Shown here in pieces: positions 22,805 through 55,565 of a DNA stretch of 64,000 nucleotides (the first letter of the stretch is position 1; every line of letters begins with the position of its first letter). Under the pieces are notes generated by a model. It was given only the letters and a program-made list of their open reading frames with translations. It was not told the DNA's origin and ran no database searches. The stretch is from Oopsacas minuta (taxonomy: Eukaryota > Animalia > Porifera). The DNA is taken from the NCBI GenBank assembly GCA_024704765.1, contig JAKMXF010000111.1, positions 1,437,627 through 1,501,626 on the forward strand, in the 5' to 3' direction. The translations under genes were made by a program, and so were the position numbers.

Positions 22805-23488
22805 TTATGTAAACATTAAATTTTCAGAAAATTCTATCTTACATTGGTCTGGGTTTGGGGGTAGGAATTTGTTAGGGTTTTGTATTCCTTTATGGAAAGT
22901 TTCGAAAAGTAACATAAGTGTTGAGTTATCCTGTTGTGGTCCCATAGCGATAGGAGTCCCGTTTCTGGTTATATAGGCGTAAAAGGTTGGATCATCTTTA
23001 TACATATGAGACAACAGTCTGCTATCCTGGAAAGTCCACAAGTCACACGATGTAGTGTTTGAATATGGACACTTTTCGTAAGTTTTTACGAATACAGAAT
23101 TCTGTGCAAAATTGAATCCTACCACAAAGGCAAAACTGAGAAAACTTGGGAGTATGACAAGAGCAGCAACGTTAACATCTTCAGCTGGGATCTTCTTACA
23201 AGAACCTTTCGTTACAAAATACAAGTAATCTGTCTTCAAATTGTAGTATATCTGGTAGAGTGGAATTTTTAAGAGAGAATCTGAGTCACTAATGGTTAAT
23301 GGGTAGTCATCAGGGTCTGTAGAGTTATAATGTACAAATACTTCCAAATCTAAGCCTTTCAGGATTGGACTGAAGAATACTGCAGGGCCTAGAGTAGCAT
23401 TGAAATCTTCTGGGATTTGAGGGCGAGGAGGTTGTGCCTGTACTCCAATTAAGAAACAACACAGGCAGATAATGTACAGAGAAAGCAT
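22805..23488 (-). CDS. Ependymin-related (EPDR-like) secreted/lysosomal protein
   Basis: Signal peptide, PPRPQIPEDF start, LYFVTKGSCKK, CDLW, and a C-terminal FHKGIQNPNKFLPPNPDQC resembling the ependymin F..GI.DP..F.PP..C motif. Confidence 0.65.
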   Translation of the reverse strand: MLSLYIICLCCFLIGVQAQPPRPQIPEDFNATLGPAVFFSPILKGLDLEVFVHYNSTDPDDYPLTISDSDSLLKIPLYQIYYNLKTDYLYFVTKGSCKKIPAEDVNVAALVILPSFLSFAFVVGFNFAQNSVFVKTYEKCPYSNTTSCDLWTFQDSRLLSHMYKDDPTFYAYITRNGTPIAMGPQQDNSTLMLLFETFHKGIQNPNKFLPPNPDQCKIEFSENLMFT

Positions 23489-24039
23489 ATTTGATAATAA
23501 TTATCCAATTAATCTCTGAACAATTCAGAAACGAGATATATAGATTATAAACCCAATATTGATTACAGCCTATATTTAATGCAGACTAATTAACACAAAT
23601 AATTATTCCACGTGGATATATTACAATTAATTTAATCTGAGCTAATCAGAGGCCAACGTAGGATCTGAAAGTAGTATTTAGTATACTGTGCAAAAAGTTT
23701 CGTATTTAGTCCCGTCACCAGTGGGTAAATATTTGTCGTAAAAGGAAGGTATTATGATGGTTTATTGATCTCTAGCTTGTTCTGAACCAGAATCCATCGG
23801 GTGCCAAACTGCCAACCTTTGAGCAATTTTTTATTTACATAAACCTCAGGAGTGTCGGCCGTTTTTTTGCGGACTTTGCTTATAATTTCGATTTAGACTA
23901 TATCAGAAACTGAGACTAGTGACATTCGAAACGGCATAGTTGACTTACTTTGTTATTTGATAAGAGCCCAATCGAAACTATACCCTTTTGACCAAATAAG
24001 TATTTAATGACTATATTGAGTCATGTTGGCATTTGTTAT

Positions 24040-24225
24040 GACTCTAAATGCTAATAGGAGTCGAAAGAGGGGTCACTCGATGTGATTAGAGCACATTTAA
24101 TAATGGAATGTTCCCAAATTCATGAGCTTTGTTATGAATAAATTTTCACTAATATATCATGTGACCACTTAAACAAACGGAAATTTTACACAACTACGAG
24201 AATCAACATAAATTTGATTAGAATT
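24040..24225. repeat. Left arm of the ~185-bp inverted repeat flanking the RTK cassette
   Basis: Its reverse complement matches 26305-26491 (35 nt with one mismatch, gtgtaaaatttccgtttgtttNagtggtcacatga; 20 nt identical, cacatcgagtgacccctctt). Confidence 0.85.
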
Positions 24226-24248
24226 ACAGTAAATATAAAATCTTCCAT

Positions 24249-25646
24249 TTAGCGCATTTTAACCATTTGGGAGCTAAAATAGGATTCTTTCAGCTTAAGC
24301 AAAAGTTCCCTCAGCTCAGATTTGAGTAGCTCTGTAATCATCATGTAAGGAGAACTACTAACTACACCAATTAACTTCAATACATTAGGATGTTTGAATT
24401 GGTTTAATATCATTGCTTCCTTTATAAACTCATTTTCTGCTTCATTATTCGTATAATCTTTTAATTTCTTAACAGCGACGTCAATAGTACCATCAGGTGA
24501 ACTATATTGTGCACTGTAAACGATTCCAAACTGCCCTTGTGCTATCAACTGTCCAATTTTTAATTTGTCTTTATTTACTTCGATATTAGGATCATGACGT
24601 AGAGATTTGATATACCGTGGAGGCTCAACGTATATCCTCCCAGAAGATGTGAGATGGTGATTCTTACTTACTCCTCGCTTAGAAATAGACGCATAATATT
24701 CTGTATCAACATAACCGTCAAGGATGGAGGTATAAAAGTCTTCTTCCTTATGACAATCAAGTAGATTCGATTTACTTTTGGTAGTTGTAGGAGATTTTGG
24801 TTGGATTTGTGATTCATATTTCCTTGAAGAATTTGTGTATGCTGTTAATGATGAATTAGAGGGTGGGACAGAAGGTATGGCCATCTGTGGTATAGGGTCA
24901 ATAGAATCAAAACTCCCACCAGCGGATTCAATTCTAGATCTTCTCTCATAGCTTAGATTTTCGCTGAGATATGAATCGAAGCTGTCATCAGCCATGAGCG
25001 GAGTAGTTCTATCCGTGTGGTAATTATTCATTAAGGTGCTATAACGATTACATGAATGAGAAACACTTCGAATATCACCATGATGTCTATTTTTAACTCT
25101 CATACATTTGATTAAGACGAGTATTATACTGAATAGAGCGATCACGATAAGGATAACTGATAGGACAGATCCCACTACTATGCCTATTTCGTTATTATTC
25201 TGTTGAGATGTACCATCTACATCTAATTCACATTTAGGTTCTAGACTATTGTGGCATAAATGACAATAATCAGATTCATTAACGTAATTACATGTAGATG
25301 TGAAGTTGCAATATGAAATATATTTATTTCCATCACAATTCGTCAAAACCAGTTTCAGATTATTATTTGAGCTCTCATAACTCTCAGCTGATCCAATATG
25401 AGCCATCCCTAGACAGAATTCATTGGTAGAGATATCGCCCAATCCTTCATCATTGAAACATAAAAACTTCCATTCGAGGGTCCTATTATTACTATTCAAA
25501 CATATTTGAATAACATTAGATAAGTTTCCTATACTAGTTACTCTTTTGTCTCCGTCTCTACTACAACTTTGAGCGAATGTGTACGATAGATAAAACGTTA
25601 ATACAGAAAGAGACAGCAAATAAACAAGTAAAATATTGGAATACAT
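24249..25646 (-). pseudogene. Receptor tyrosine kinase with an SRCR-like ectodomain, truncated after the kinase N-lobe
   Basis: Signal peptide; degenerate SRCR cysteine pattern (VIQIC..WKFLC..EFCLGM..TNCDGN..YC); TM IGIVVGSVLSVILIVIALFSIILVLI; Tyr-bearing juxtamembrane region; GQGQFG-like loop (IAQGQFGIVY), VAVKKLK, EFIKEAMILNQFKHPNVLKLIGVV. It stops before HRD/DFG, and no downstream exon carrying them was found. Confidence 0.85.
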
Positions 25647-26090
25647 AAAAGCGAGAATCCAATTTCTTCCAGTACGATATTATTGATAAAGCAATAATAT
25701 CAATGATTATGAGAATATCTACCAGAAGAGTGATATATGATATGTACTCCTGAATAGATATACCTATGACTATCAATTGATGCCTCTAAATGCAGTATAA
25801 ATGAAAAAAGAATACTTTGGAACCTCTCTACGTGAGGCGTATTTCGATCATTTTACTCAAAATATTTCAGTAATAACAAATTCCATAAGCTGGATGCTGA
25901 CATTAAATTGAATAATAAAATTGGACTCGTAACAGAGCAAAATGGATAAATAATAGATTAATAGAATAAAGAATAAATGTGAATCATTTTCAGATGTTGT
26001 GAATTTATGTTCTATCAAAATTGATTGAGCATTTTATAAATTCAATATTCGGTATCAGGCTTATTCATTAGAAGATTAAAAAGTTAGTAA

Positions 26091-26296
26091 TCAAGAATCC
26101 AAAGAGCACTTGGATATTTGCCTAAAAGTTGGTCTCATTTTTGGATCTTGCCTCCATGTCTCTAACATGATTTGGTACATTTTTTCTGGACAGCGACAGG
26201 TTGTGGGAGGGTGTCTCCATTTGCAAGAGCTTGTATAACTTCCTCATTCTTACTACCTTCCCATGGCTTATCTCCCAGTGACCAGATCTCATACAG
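26091..26296 (-). pseudogene. Tyrosine kinase C-lobe fragment (subdomains IX-XI), frameshifted
   Basis: Translates LYEIWSLGDKPWEGSKNEEVIQALANGDTLPQPV, then after a 1-nt deletion CPEKMYQIMLETWRQDPKMRPTFRQISKCSLDS*. It is missing from the ORF track because it is short and frameshifted. Confidence 0.88.
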
Positions 26297-26304
26297 TCAA
26301 TAAT

Positions 26305-26491
26305 ATATTCTAATTTTCATGCTTGATTTCGTAAACAGTGTAAAATTTCCGTTTGTTTCAGTGGTCACATGAATATATTAGTGAAAAAAGTTTTTTAGCA
26401 ACGCTCAGGAATTTGGCAACATTCCATTCTCATAATGTGTCCTAGCCACATCGAGTGACCCCTCTTCCGACTCCAATTGGCATTAAGAGTC
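26305..26491. repeat. Right arm of the ~185-bp inverted repeat flanking the RTK cassette
   Basis: Inverted copy of 24040-24225. Confidence 0.85.
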
Positions 26492-27064
26492 CTGTTGTAT
26501 AATATTTTGAGGGGAATGTTGCAAATTAACAACAAGAGTTGTCAAATTACCAACACATTGTCATATTGTTACGCGTTCAAGTAGACCAAAGTACTTAGAT
26601 TCAATGAGATGTAATCGAATATAGAACAAGAAAATACGACACACGCTGACTTCTTTAATTATTAAACGCGCGAACAAGGGCGATTGACGCATGAAGCGCT
26701 GTCCCAAGTTTTGAGGCCTATTGAGGACTTAATTTCTATTGTTGGTAATTTGACAACACTCTTGCTGGGGGCGTACCTAATTTCCGGGACGTGACGTGAC
26801 GGTCGCTTAAATTGTAGATGCTAAAGTACTGGACATAACATTGCAGTAACCTACCAAATTCATCTCCCAAAGTGTATAACTATGTATATGTTTATGAATA
26901 AGACACCGCTACCTGTTTATTCAAAGCGTATGGACTACAGTGTTTTGCTTACTCCCTGTGTGATCGACTCCCGGGACCTAAAATGCAAGCATTTTGGCGA
27001 TCCCTGAGGTACGTGTCTCGCTAACATATGGGAAACCAATCTAATGAAATAGGATCCCTTACTA

Positions 27065-27101
27065 ATTTCTCACACTAGCTATAATAGCTAGTGTGAGAAA
27101 T
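27065..27101. repeat. 37-bp palindrome (18-bp arms, 1-nt centre)
   Basis: atttctcacactagctat-a-atagctagtgtgagaaat. Confidence 0.9.
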
Positions 27102-27851
27102 CCCCCCCTATTGTATTAGTTATCACTTATCAGGCCACCCTCACGCGCTTACACCGGCCCCAGATTATTTCAGGTACTAGCTCTAAGATCCCTGGGGTAG
27201 TAGAGATAACACAGAATACATGAAGCATATAGTTTTACACTTTGTGAGAATGAATCTGTCATCCTCTTCTATGATGTTTAATCCACCTAATGAGCAACTT
27301 TTAAGTTGATTAAACCTTTTAAACCAAAAATATTAAAACATTGTTAGAGGAGCCTAATATCAAAATTGTCCGATTTTTAATTTTTTGAGAAATTTTTCTC
27401 TTTTCTTGAAAACTACCAGATGTAATGTGTTGTAACTTTCACAAACTATAGCCTATTAAAGGACTTGCCGTATTCAAACTGTCAAACTAATTGAAGATGA
27501 TTGGTGAAATCATTGGATGGTTTGACAAATAATTACTATCACGTTATATTTCTAAAACCCTATTATTACTTTGCCATCGTAATTTTAACTGTAGAACTAC
27601 AGAACTATTCGAAATATAAATAAAATAGAATATTTCCAGTAATATTTTCAGATAGAATGATATAAACACATTTATAGCCAATCTTGTTGCTCACTTGTAA
27701 TACAAATTAATTCTGTTAACCAACCCAGCCCTAAACAGTGAATAGATTAGGTAATTAATTATAGAATTAGTAGTATAGGCATCTGTTTCAGATGGTTTTC
27801 ATTTATTTTAAGTTAGATATAGTAGATTCCGCGAATTTTCATACATTAACT

Positions 27852-30800
27852 ATGTATCTATTCATTCATATTCTGTTTCTCTGCCATTTTGTACTATCTA
27901 TAATAGCAACAGAATCTCTGCAGTGGAATGTTGATTTCAAACGAAATACTGGGATACTAAATGAAACGCTGGTACCAACTAATGATAGCGCTCTTTTCAT
28001 CATCAAGATACAAGATAATAACGACTTTGTAAGTTGATTTATAAGCCAGCAATTTTATTCGTATCTTAATGTGATTATTCTACAGTCTAGTTCTATACAA
28101 TTCCAATCAGTTCTACAACTGGTTCAACCCTTACTTACTCTTAAGTATTATCTACCCCATCAGTCGCAATCTTCAGTGAATAAGATTCTCCCTTCTCTTT
28201 GTCTCTTATCAGATGTTTCTATATACTGTGATGCTTCCCCTGATGTAGATTCTATCCTACAGCTATGTACTACACACAGGCTGAGATCCTCACTCAACAG
28301 TTCCCTACACCACACCCACTTGTGTACGGAGGGGGCTGAATTAGACTGGGTGTGGGTAGCAGAGTTTCAGCTGCCACATAATACTCTACAATTCGTATCC
28401 ATTTTTGCTAACATTGAATCTAACTCATTTGGGATAGACATACCAACACTGAGGTATCCAGCAATTAATGTAAATTAATTCAATATTTAATATATTTAGC
28501 TGTTTAGGTTACATTTTTTAGTCATACATTTGAGTACTCTAGCAAACAGAACAGCTGTAAACCTACAACTTGTTCCATTCTCCCTGCCTACAAATACACA
28601 TGGAAACTTACTGAGGAGCTTTCTACTAGCTGGTAATGTCGTTAGTCTGTGGAATGGAGATATTCTCTTTCAGCAACAAGATCACCTCTATTCCTTAGAT
28701 TGGAAAGTGAGTTGTTTGTATATTTAGCGTGTTGTCCTTGTTCTTTATTATTGATATTTCAGTCCACTACACAACTGTCAGTTACAGATTGTGTAACACA
28801 AGAATATCCTGTCACTTCTATACAGGTATTACCAAATGGTATCTACGCGAGTACTGAGGTATTAACTATATACTACAAGTACAATCAACTCTAGTTACAC
28901 CGAACACTAAGAGAGACCATTGGCGCCAAGTTTTAGGAAAAAAAATCAGACCTGGGGTTCTACCATGTGAAATTGCAGCTACTTCTTTGTAAATTTCACA
29001 AAAATACCCTCTCCACCACTAACCGGGGGGTCCAGACCCCCTAGATACCCAAACTTGGCGCCTATGAGAGAGGCTATATCTATTTTGAATTTAAAATGTT
29101 TCTAATCTCAAAATTCGATAAAACTAGAGTTGACTAGAATTGTTGTTCTATTGTTTTGTTGTATTAATCGTGTATCACTTCTAGTACGGAATGCTATGGA
29201 TAGAGAGGAGTAATCATCTCAATTATACAGTTAGTTAATTATCTTTATCATAGACGGTATCAGAGATGTTAAATTCTCTTGTTTTGTAAATAATAATATA
29301 TTCTGCATAGCTATACAAACACATAAATGATGAGAGCTGTGCATTAGACTTGGCCTATGAAGAGAGAGAACCTCACACAATAGATTTATATTCACTTGAT
29401 AATGAGAAGGGAGATATCAAGCTAATGGGGGAAGATGGTATACATATACGCTAAGATTACATGAATGGAGTGATTTAGCATATTTGATTTGTATCCATTT
29501 GTTGTAGGAACTTTTAAATCTATATTTACATTTAACCTGTGGGATGAAATGGGACAATATTTACAGCCTGATATGCTAGGTAGGAGATAGATTTCTTCAG
29601 TAAATATATATGTTCTCTTTTTTCCATTCATTTTATCATCAGATAACTCTACAATATTATCATTCCTACGCTGCTGGGTGAGACAAGAGATTCTCGTTCT
29701 TGTATCTAACATACAGTCTACTAAACTAATAACTTTTGATTTAGGTAAATATTCATTCCCTACTAATGCAGTATGCTGTAGCTAATTATTATTTGAATGC
29801 CGGAATTTTGGTATCTGGAACTTTTCGAAGCCCATTTCATAACTTAAATTTTCTCTAAGAAAGCCCAAGGAAATTTCCTGCATAGCAAACAAACTTATTA
29901 TCAATAATTCAGGAATTCGTCAATTTCATTCAATTTACTAACTTTATCCATATAATGATATAATTCCAGCAATTCAGATAATATATTTACAAATTCAGGA
30001 AATATGTTTGCAATATTTAAATATCCTCGAGATATTGCATGCGCTGATTCCAGTCCTTATTTGCAGCAATCGTTTCTACATCTATTTCATACAAATATAT
30101 ACTCAGATATGTAATATGTATTTTCATGCGATATAAGTATAGTATCCGCGGACATTATATATATTTAACCTATTACATGCGTTTGAATATTATCTAACGG
30201 AATTTAATAACAGATTTTACTTTTCTACTTCACAGTGAGGAAGAAAGCTCTAAAACAGTACAAATTCCCTCAATATCTCCCTTCGCAAACAGGTATTCCT
30301 TGTTATATAACCCATATGGATATTTTTAAAATACTGTTAACTTGAACAAGATGTTTGGCGGTATCATATTTAGGTAAACATCATGTATAGTTAGATAACT
30401 GATATAGAGTGGCAGTATTGAGAGTTTTCCTGTAAATGTGACAGATACTTCATAAATAATTTAAATATTAAAAAGGATAACGTACAACTGTCTAACAAAA
30501 TTTTTGGTGATTATTTAAAAAATATTTTCACAATATCTGCTTCTATTCAAGTTATCGATTTGTTGTTTCCTAAAGTTCAGAATTGTTTGTATTTATAATT
30601 GCGTTACATTAGGAAATGACGAATCTACTCTTATTCATCTATCTTCTAACAATCCAGATACTAATCGTTCCTTAATTATACGAGACATGAAGGTTCTCTC
30701 AAATACTGAGGTACTGCTCTGGGGTTCATCACTTCTCTACAGGTGGATTGTATAGCTAGCAGCTGAATATAATTAGCCTTTAATTAACCTTTAGTTACAT

Positions 30801-33800
30801 ACTTTACCCTAATCTGATATCTCTCTAGTCCTGATTGTGGAAACAGCTTCTACTTCTTCTCTGAGATTACAGACTCTATTTCTCAAGTAGATATTCTTCC
30901 TACTGGCAGATTCATTGTAGTTACACAGCAACATCAGGTAGCTGTCTATCAAAGGGTTACACACTATTAGGACTTACAATCCTGGGATTGTAAGCTCTAC
31001 ACACTAAGTATTCACTAATGCAGCGGTACCTAACCTGGGGTTCATGGACTCCTTAGTGATCCATGGGCGACACTTTGGGAGTTGTATATTACAGTCTATG
31101 GGAGGTGTTAAATATGAAGTCCTCTGCTGAAAAAGGTTGGGAACCGCTGCACTAATGTATAATTCTCATTTACTTAGATGTGGCATAGCTCAGCTTACAC
31201 TCTCCAGTTGCAACAGTTGTTTATTCAAATACAAGAAAATACAACAAATCTCTATCAGCTGATTACTGATGACATTTTAGAGCTTGTAAGTTATCTACTT
31301 ATTATAAATGTAGTATATTTGTTTGTTATATCTAATTTTTCTATCTACATACGTAGACAACCTTATCCAATAGCAGCAAGCCCCAGGTATCTCGTTACCA
31401 ACTGCTTTCAGTACCAAAACCCAGTTATTCGTCTTCAAACTGTTCTTCAGAACTAAATAGCACAACTCACGTGCTTCTAAATTCATCCCTCTTATCTCCT
31501 GATGACTGGATTACAACATTAACATCATCATCTAACTCTTCCTGTCCCTTCTCCTCTCTTTCTCTCCTCTCTCCTCATTGTGTCACACTTACAAGAGAAT
31601 TACATCAGTTTGTTTCATCTATACCAGATCTATCTGAGTTAATCACTGACTTCTTCACTCCCTATCCTGTGCTTAATTGTACTCGCACTGGTGAGGGACT
31701 CCCGCAGCACTTCTACTTAGACAAATCTTCTCAATTCAATATATCTCTTATCATCCATCTTCTCCCTTATTTCTCATGCCTGACATCCAATGGTGATGAT
31801 TTTAACATAATTTCGTACTTATTTATTTAGAATTTTTGAATTTATTAATGTACTTTACGTAACCTGTGTAGATACTGAAAGACAAGATATCCCTCAAGTA
31901 TTTGTCTGGTTTTCTAGAGAACTGCTAGAAGCAAACTCTCAGCTATTATACCATCCTCTTACACATACGCTCACATATTCGGTTAGTGACTCATTAATTA
32001 TTATAATTACAACTAATTATGGTATATTTCTCATGAGCAATATGAGAAATTGGGAAATTTACAAAATTCTCACTTTGTTGGACTGTTTGCAAAACTATTT
32101 TGGAATTTTGCAAGTTTTACCTTCAGCTGGACAACTTACATAATTCTGTCGTAATATCCAAGTAATTTACATATTGCTAATCTCTTGGGCAATTTACTTA
32201 ATTCTATCATTGCATATTGCAGTCTATCCTTATCGGGATATTGCATAACTTCTGCTATTATAAGGTCCAGACAATTTGCTAATTTTTTTTATAACTTCCA
32301 GGTAATTTGTATACTGCCACTCTTATGGAATGGGAAGTTGCATAATTATATCACTATCATAAAATCTAGTTATGCTCTAGTAGAGGTGTTCTGAGTCAAA
32401 AGGTCCCTCCTATATATTTGCTCCGGGGGTACCATTTGACCTAAATTTTAGTCCTTTTAGGCCAAATTATCCCCCATTAAATATTAACACATTTTAGTTT
32501 CAATATTATAAGCTGTAAGGGTTCATATTCTGATAACTATGTTACTTTTAACTTTGTATCAGGGGACCATTTTATTGATTATATATATTTTTCAGCCAAT
32601 TGGCCCCACACTATTATTTTGCAACGTTTACAGTTTCAACATTGTATGGTTTCATATTGTAATAATTGCCTTCTTTAGATTTCGGATAATGCAATAATAC
32701 CCAGTGGTTCAGCGGTCCGGCAATTTCATGGACCAGACCGAACCTCCAAATATCTAGGGGGGGACCATTTGGCCAGAACAGAGGTGATATAATGTTACAA
32801 TTCTGGGAACCTGGGAGAGAAGTATTTTACTCGCATTAGAGAAATATTAACTTTATTCTTTGGGTGTAGTGTAATATATATATATATAATGCTGGTAGGA
32901 AAGACAATCAACTTATGAGTAAAGTCTATTCAGGCTACATAGTATTAGCAACAACCAAAAATTGATGGATACTCTCTGAGCAATTTCCAATTGTCTAGTT
33001 TAGCGAGCATTCTAAAATATGTCTAATCTATAAATTATTCTGCTAAGCGAGCATCATACAAATTGCCCAATTTAATATATTGGTGATAACTCAAATGCCA
33101 TTTTATACATACTACAATTCCTGCTCTATCTCAAGTAGATTTCTCTGACAGTTAATCAAAGCCTCAATGCAAAATTACTCACTGGAGACATTCTTGCCTC
33201 TTCTGAGATTAAACTCAAGGTTAGTTATTGGCACCCTTACTGTGTAGTTTCCAACGCGGCTTACGCCGATACTATAGACTGCCAGTGATAGAATAATAGA
33301 TCAAAATAACAGAATATGGAGAAATAGCCTCGAAAAGGAAATACACTAATAGAACATTTCCAATCCCAAACTTTGCAAATATGTATATATATTATGATTA
33401 CTGTTGTTAGCCTATGGTGAAGATAAATTTCAATATTTTCTAAAAACTCTGTAGTTTTCTGATTAAACATAGTCGAATGCACATAATAAACCAACATTTA
33501 CATTGTACAGGTATTGATATTATTTTCCTTAGATCTCCCCTTCAAGTTCTGATTGCACTGAATTAAACTCTAAGATGAGTTCTACGGTGTTTATTGGCTG
33601 TCCCTCCAGTCTGTCTATCATGTTTGACAAAGAAGGATCTGAAAATAACGATATTTGGATCAAACCAACTGTTTGTGACGAACAGCCTAATCTATCTTGT
33701 TTGTTCTTCGATTTTGGTTAGTTAGTTAATAAATTATTTTGTGATATACCTGTAAATATGACTGAATGCTTTCAATCCACAGGCTTCACTCCTCATTTCT

Positions 33801-55016: not shown

Positions 55017-55565
55017 CATTTTGCATATAATAGATTAAAATATATCAAAACAGGAAACTTGGGGTTGATATGTCTATATTTAGGCTCAGCTCGCTCAACT
55101 CGCCTAGCGGCGTCGATAGAGGGGTCACTCGGCATGGTTAGGACAAATTTTGAGAATGGAATGTCGTCACATTCCTGAGGCATTCTTGTGTTGCTAGGGA
55201 ATATCTCCAATTATGATCAACCATTCGAAGGAAGGGAAATTTACGCTGATAACGAATATCGACATATTAATTGGATTCACTTAAAATTATGCACGCTGGT
55301 CGCTTTTTAAGAGGTGTAAAAAGAAAATTCTATGTAATCATTTGTGGTCACAATTTTGGAATACGAAAATGGCAACATTGTTTTTCAAAAGTCCTTAGAT
55401 CATAAACTATCCAAAAATATAAAGCGCAACAAATCCCCACAAAATTGTATAACATAAACAATACCATGGATAAACTAATCGACATAATCTCAAATTCACA
55501 CACATAATAGAGCAGATAATAAAAATATATATACGCTAATTTTCAGTTCAATTCATTGACTGCTG

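Follow-up and report, generated by a model that had tools for sequence, protein, structure and literature searches.

A colinear copy of part of a receptor tyrosine kinase gene row at the apex of a foldback MITE relic in the hexactinellid sponge Oopsacas minuta

Introduction

The closest described counterparts of the locus reported here are the Pack-TIRs of animals, and for their single-copy examples it has been argued that internal fragile sites gave rise to them through transposition-independent gap filling (Tan et al., 2021, Nat Commun 12:4280, PMC8277862), with Pack-Tigger1 in gibbons as one worked example. Their signatures are a bias towards donors in cis, microhomology with a median of 2 bp, capture long after insertion of the TE, and breakpoints that lie internally, with the TE gap at a median of 4.6% (PMC8277862). 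By the definition used in that study, a Pack-TIR holds an insert of 100-5000 bp of non-TE DNA whose flanks are two pieces of the same TIR element, and each of these flanks contains 10 bp or more of the consensus terminals. It also has a unique parental copy, without TE flanks, that shares at least 90% identity with the insert at a length ratio of 80-120%, and the insert is not a retrocopy (PMC8277862). In its main text the study uses none of the words "sponge", "Porifera" and "Amphimedon" (PMC8277862).

The Pack-MULEs and Pack-CACTA elements of plants likewise carry gene fragments between terminal inverted repeats, and chimeric ORFs are possible in both. They are typically multi-copy and mobile, possess both termini and target-site duplications (TSDs) and belong to other superfamilies, whereas the element described here is a single copy of a pogo-type MITE with no evidence of mobility. 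On the side of the captured gene, naturally truncated, kinase-deficient isoforms of receptor tyrosine kinases (RTKs) act as decoys, and these isoforms are conserved and expressed. On the side of the element, the FB foldback elements of Drosophila have been named as prone to rearrangement (PMC8277862).

The window, by which we mean the whole 64-kb stretch of DNA that was analysed, is C111:1437627-1501626 in an assembly of 61.46 Mb and 365 contigs with about 36% GC. The published genome of Oopsacas minuta (Hexactinellida) comprises 365 scaffolds with 36% G+C and about 61 Mb (PMC10280926). An earlier note on this DNA had drawn attention to an intronless RTK cassette between inverted repeats, and its claims are taken up below together with the results that bear on them.

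Layout of the captured RTK cassette

The captured RTK piece is 2016 bp long and occupies 24282-26297 on the minus strand. Read on that strand, the order is kinase tail, spacer and head ORF, all of them between the inverted arms. The kinase tail (26094-26296, minus strand) copies the last 68 codons, comprising subdomains IX-XI and the stop, of an 801-aa parental SRCR-RTK, and the spacer (25647-26090, minus strand) is 444 bp of intergenic DNA from between two parental genes. The head ORF (24249-25646, minus strand) encodes 465 aa, namely 455 parental residues and 10 MITE-derived residues before the stop. The tail matches the Pfam PK_Tyr_Ser-Thr profile in two frames, at profile positions 194-233 (26296-26164) and 232-256 (26186-26094); the frames were searched against Pfam separately and were never joined across the frameshift, which is a 1-bp deletion in the copy at about 26195 relative to the parent. 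The Pfam matches, the ORF and the alignment with the donor all agree with the layout of tail, spacer and head, with one frameshift, that was originally described.

A signal peptide, a Cys-rich SRCR-like ectodomain, a TM segment, a juxtamembrane region and a kinase N-lobe that runs to ...LKLKES make up the head ORF. Its kinase match covers positions 1-107 only of the 258 positions of the PK_Tyr_Ser-Thr profile (E 1e-18), and the glycine loop, the VAVK lysine and the alpha-C glutamate can be recognised by eye in the translation. The earlier note had stated that the catalytic core was missing and that RTK sequence was confined to the space between the arms, and a tblastn search of the entire 64-kb window with the two complete parent proteins gave the same picture, with no HRD/DFG core and no RTK sequence beyond the head and tail pieces. 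The complete catalytic domain with HRD and DFG that marks a functional RTK is absent from the cassette, and the head ORF, having neither HRD nor DFG, therefore cannot be a kinase.

Pfam SRCR gave no match on the 465-aa ORF, and residues 1-134 of the ORF align with the N-terminus of the 801-aa parental RTK at 30% identity (E 1e-12). This parental protein carries Pfam SRCR. Because the N-terminus of the ORF aligns with the SRCR-bearing N-terminus of its 801-aa neighbour, "divergent SRCR-like domain" is an acceptable label for the ectodomain. The head ORF has been called as a gene by the gene caller of the public collection (P0001). No record of the exact 465-aa product was found on any other contig in public assemblies, and a protein word-index search returned nothing beyond the protein of the window itself and foreign RTKs of 39-45% identity.

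The donor locus

A genome search located the sole other copy of the inter-arm DNA at C111:1268294-1270310, which is 193 kb upstream on the same contig and strand; the second-best genomic match to the captured piece reaches 88% over 153 bp. In a global alignment the copy and the donor (2016 vs 2017 bp) differ by 45 substitutions and three single-base indels and are 97.6% identical. The minus strand of the donor locus holds an intact 801-aa gene (SRCR and full kinase), a spacer of about 445 bp and an intact 658-aa gene (full kinase), and the PK_Tyr profiles of the two genes are complete, at 1-258 and 1-256 of 258 positions. Both genes lie among at least seven intronless RTK ORFs that are clustered at C111:1260-1286 kb. 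The proposal that the cassette carries a tail-to-head junction from a tandem RTK array was therefore correct, down to the same spacer.

The copied interval starts at codon 734 of the 801-aa gene, crosses the spacer and ends at codon 455 of the 658-aa gene. Colinearity with the donor holds throughout the 2016 bp of the copy, which has no closure junction inside it. Since the copied interval passes from one gene into the next, the cassette gives the impression of a permuted order. Measured against a single gene the order is indeed altered, but measured against the donor locus it is not, and in that respect the description of the cassette as permuted does not hold. The copied spacer presumably includes the promoter of the 658-aa gene. 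No match to the repeat family of the arms, termed family A below, was found within 1.5 kb on either side of the donor locus, and the flanks of the donor interval are intact kinase-coding parts of both genes. The copy is not a retrocopy: it spans a spacer and parts of two genes, and poly(A) is present at neither junction.

The arms and the family-A foldback MITE

A repeat search detected the inverted arms at 24040-24191 and 26338-26491 as three abutting blocks with 82-97% identity. They were widened by blastn to 24040-24224 and 26306-26491 (82%, E 7e-43), and a hand-checked MAFFT alignment took the right arm to 26298, the equivalent of about 24237 on the left. By alignment the arms are about 195 nt long, close to the estimate of about 185 bp in the earlier note. 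Pairing with what survives of the right arm thus involves 24040-24237 (plus strand) of the left arm.

As judged from the genomic copies, the outer edges of these paired arms, at 24040 and 26491, are not mobile-element ends, and on the left side homology runs out to 23707. Here the left or "long" arm (23707-24283, plus strand) begins, directly after a TA, with GTCCCGTCACCAG..., and it ends in ...GCTAAAATAGG, the last base before the hairpin apex. Many genomic copies start to match at 23703-23710, which marks the left terminus at 23707, and an alignment of 19 ends gave TA followed by GTCCAGTCGCCAGAGGGT... as the common terminus across family-A copies. Colinear matches cross 23707-24280 in the copies on C310, C5 and C332, and the inner end of the long arm was set against the canonical copies L004, L024 and L060. 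In the genome as a whole the arm family has at least 18 matches, and the outer arm has 27 further matches.

Complete family-A copies are either foldback elements, which reach about 1.1 kb on C310, or, as on C66 and C155, shorter derivatives that arose by deletion. In their canonical layout a long arm ending in ...GCTAAAATAGG is followed by an apex of about 20 bp and then by a short arm in reverse complement. Identity among family-A copies is 68-82%, and between the two arms in the window it is 82-85%. On C329, family-A ends (a 72% inverted repeat) enclose 2.6 kb with broken CENP-B_N, HTH_Tnp_Tc5 and DDE_1 ORFs. This element, the only transposase-bearing family-A copy seen and itself broken, has the make-up of a relic pogo/Tigger-type transposon, and because family-A ends surround pogo-type transposase ORFs in it, family A can be assigned on sequence grounds to the foldback MITE families derived from a pogo/Tigger-type (Tc1/mariner superfamily) transposon. 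Of the 16 ends that could be read, about 12 have TA directly before the terminus, among them both ends of the copies on C310 and C66, and a TA target-site duplication is likely for the family, although at 36% GC an invariant TA could be element sequence.

The genomic copies also bear on how the two arms came to face each other. The earlier note had allowed for two solo MITEs inserted independently, and this was rejected, as the arms complement each other as the long and the short arm of a single canonical copy. An origin of the right arm by snap-back copying of its left counterpart during the capture was rejected as well, the arms being 82-85% identical vs 97.6% for the copy and its donor. The earlier note had also asked whether paired arms recur around other captured genes; no captured host DNA was found in the two-armed copies inspected (C310, C66, C155, C332, C5 and C329), of which the last holds the transposase relic. 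When the two arms of the window were joined without the insert in a script, they formed a single long hairpin at -127.9 kcal/mol with DNA parameters, compared with -33.7 +/- 4.2 for shuffles (z = -22.6).

The truncated right arm and its neighbouring repeats

Of the right or "short" arm, the inner 195 nt or so remain (26298-26491, minus strand), and the outer 330 nt or so are missing together with the right terminus. An inverted mate of 23707-24039 was found in the window neither by a repeat search of 23000-32000 nor by blastn of 23600-24300 against the whole window, and the only arm scrap that blastn returned elsewhere in the window was 71 nt long (55109-55179). Immediately to the right lies repeat family B (26492-27244, no strand assigned), which is unrelated to family A and whose genomic copies begin at 26492. 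It has 64 genomic matches listed, and its copies on C109, C313, C20 and C188 begin at query base 1-2 without an adjoining family-A arm. None of the other genomic loci inspected contained B. A third family, C (27249-27536, strand not given), follows after B. Together, families B and C cut off the right arm of the MITE, and they bound the cassette and are not part of it. Of the two termini only the left one, at 23707, survives, so that the chimera does not amount to a complete mobile element. As the right TE terminus is missing, a TSD cannot be shown for this MITE copy.

Junctions at the hairpin apex

At the left junction, donor-derived sequence starts at ...GCTAAAATAGG, and the "GG" common to arm and donor amounts to a microhomology of 2 bp, a length that is not significant by itself. 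At the right junction, donor homology stops at 26297, and the short arm follows in reverse complement from 26298, with an overlap of at most 1 bp. Set against the canonical copies, the RTK piece stands in exactly for the apex of about 20 bp, and about 20 bp of the TE centre have been lost. The chimera of MITE and RTK sequence is single-copy in the genome.

Divergence of the head ORF

Relative to the donor, the head has diverged by 2.05%, the spacer (which has two indels) by 2.5% and the tail by 4.35%. The 28 differences in the head comprise 21 non-synonymous and 7 synonymous changes, which gives a dN/dS of 0.81 (Nei-Gojobori, copy vs donor) that does not differ from 1 (p = 0.64). The data reject an omega of 0.2 for both lineages (p = 0.0005) and do not reject one of 0.5. 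When 14-28 random substitutions were simulated, the ORF stayed open in 49-24% of cases. Because the dN/dS of the head is 0.81 and the tail is frameshifted, the 465-aa ORF is probably a decaying passenger.

Discussion

In our reading, to which we give a probability of roughly 0.72, a stretch of the RTK row was copied by break repair into the apex of an old foldback MITE relic, as a case of transposition-independent gap filling. The long imperfect palindrome of this old and immobile relic would have broken, or stalled replication, at its tip, and the break would have been mended by a microhomology-guided template switch to the nearby ectopic RTK row and then back. The outcome would be a promoter region together with an open 465-aa N-terminal RTK fragment without a catalytic core, and the copied piece would afterwards have decayed neutrally as a passenger. 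Break repair and gap filling in an old relic are preferred to capture by an active transposon because the TE family shows 68-82% identity vs 97.6% for the capture. On these values the capture, at 2.4% divergence, is young and the MITE family old. All four signatures of Tan et al. (2021) are present, namely a donor in cis, microhomology, a capture that postdates the insertion of the TE, and breakpoints that are internal and leave a very small TE gap.

Foreign DNA between the two arms of one TIR element would fit equally well with a capture coupled to transposition, in which an active family-A element was excised, abortive gap repair switched to the RTK array, and the chimera either transposed to its present place or stayed and later lost its right end. 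A transposase-bearing relative of family A does exist (on C329), but that copy is broken, the family is old at 68-82% identity against 2.4% divergence for the capture, and the chimera is single-copy. Moreover, about 20 bp were lost at the centre, whereas excision repair is expected to delete more, and toward the termini (Tan et al., PMC8277862), and we consider a capture of this kind unlikely. End joining of an extrachromosomal fragment, either linear or a circle from the RTK array, into a break at the MITE apex is suited by the blunt or near-blunt junctions with 0-2 bp of microhomology and is nevertheless very unlikely in our judgement. The copy is colinear end to end, and a circle would need to have reopened exactly where it had closed; a unit-length recombination circle is further opposed by ends at non-equivalent kinase positions (profile 194 vs about 107). 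The marks of eccDNA, which are an order permuted relative to the donor and an internal closure junction, are both absent, and the reinserted circular intermediate offered in the earlier note is unnecessary as well as disfavoured. A linear fragment would have the same sequence signature as templated synthesis. A chimeric join of RTK-array reads with repeat-rich sequence might be suspected at a locus that is a nest of repeats, in an assembly that is a polished, gap-filled scaffold set (PMC10280926). However, the 48 differences from the donor are spread along the copy, so these are not misplaced donor reads, and a random mis-join would not place both junctions exactly at the canonical apex; an assembly artefact is barely credible.

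A different question is whether the copied head has become a new gene, that is a membrane-anchored, kinase-dead decoy or dominant-negative receptor under the co-copied promoter. The ORF is open over 465 aa, the spacer with the presumed promoter was copied along with it, and none of the three indels falls within the head ORF (Fisher p = 0.034), which could be taken as a weak hint of constraint. The amino-acid changes are also few in the N-lobe (2 of 19) and in the ectodomain (3 of 19). Against this, the dN/dS of 0.81 is indistinguishable from neutral, an ORF left open is expected in 24-49% of the neutral simulations, coding and spacer divergence are similar, and the C-terminus consists of 10 residues of TE read-through. 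The decoy receptor that the earlier note had envisaged is thus unsupported, and we regard a functional gene as distinctly unlikely. Like the decoy RTK isoforms, the ORF combines an ectodomain, a TM segment and a partial cytoplasmic part without catalysis; unlike them, it is without detectable constraint. If a functional gene were nonetheless the case, its product would be a receptor with the parental SRCR-like ectodomain, a Tyr-rich juxtamembrane region and a dead half-kinase, which might serve the 658-aa RTK as a decoy or dominant-negative partner. Repair of a TE hairpin would then be a route to kinase-less "paired" receptors in the RTK repertoire of this sponge.

Returning to break repair at the apex as the preferred origin, the cassette agrees with every part of the Pack-TIR definition but one, the right TE terminal. 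The insert of 2016 bp lies between the long and the short arm of one family-A copy, the parent is 97.6% identical (2016 vs 2017 bp) and not TE-flanked, and the copy did not arise by retroposition; on the left the terminal is retained, at 23707, and the right arm stops internally at 26491. The Pack-type transposon of the earlier note stands to the extent that the piece lies inside a TIR-type element. It does not stand for the arms, which are internal to a longer MITE, nor for a complete, mobile element, as the right terminus is missing and the chimera is single-copy.

With the Pack-TIRs of Tan et al. the cassette shares a unique and young parent on the same chromosome, about 2 bp of microhomology, internal breakpoints, a tiny TE gap, a TE far older than the capture and the Tc1/mariner (pogo/Tigger) superfamily. 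Unlike them it lacks the right terminal, has its breakpoint exactly at the foldback apex and resides in a hexactinellid host. Its donor is 193 kb off and not within the <15 kb typical of most single-copy Pack-TIRs, a distance that counts against gap filling. Like foldback and long-palindrome fragile sites, the locus presents a long imperfect palindrome, a strong hairpin potential and a rearrangement at the tip; unlike Drosophila FB, family A is a pogo-derived MITE whose fragility we infer.

The process itself, Pack-TIR duplication, is already known, and the placement at the apex illustrates the fragile-site idea and is not a new mechanism. At this locus the donor, the recipient element, both junctions and the relative ages can all be read for a host gene fragment in a DNA-transposon relic of a sponge. 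The breakpoint at the exact hairpin tip lends some support to the view that internal fragile sites of TIR elements, and not transposition, seed such duplications.

Probable parent element and neighbouring repeats

The family A foldback MITEs, whose arms surround the captured RTK piece, likely have their parent type in a relic autonomous pogo/Tigger-like transposon on another contig of the Oopsacas minuta assembly (C329:198347-201570; locus excerpts L058:1498-3282 with L061:1-1780). This relic has inverted ends of ~325 nt that are 72% identical, and its broken ORFs carry CENP-B_N, HTH_Tnp_Tc5 and DDE_1 domains. The MITE arm also holds a sub-unit that occurs independently, as indicated by a solitary 71-nt scrap at window 55109-55179 (76-83% identical to 24057-24127 and 26404-26474) and by ~8 further genomic arm matches limited to the same ~70-130-nt core.

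Beyond the MITE lie two more repeat families. Family B occupies window 26492-27244 and contains a 37-nt palindrome (27065-27101), and family C covers 27249-27536; together they have 64 genomic matches at 70-89% identity, at least 40 of them to B. Copies of family B elsewhere look like foldbacks too, for instance in adjoining inverted parts on contigs C298 and C20, and the locus around window 26492-27536 is crowded with truncated repeats of the foldback type.

Other shared gene sequences

The donor row of intronless RTK genes includes a third RTK, on the opposite strand (C111:1275374-1275527; excerpts L021/L031), to which the copied kinase tail is 88% identical at the nucleotide level along 153 bp. 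The N-lobes, by contrast, reach a protein identity of only 42-48%, and so large a disparity suggests that local gene conversion may have acted among the kinase 3′ ends within this row.

Beside the MITE, a 227-aa ORF on the minus strand (window 22805-23488) has no Pfam domain and appears to encode a secreted protein. No inverted repeats surround the 98% identical copy, on another contig (C354:612564-612744; L056:1501-1681), of a 180-bp stretch inside this ORF (window 23052-23231); the shared stretch is another young gene-fragment duplication.
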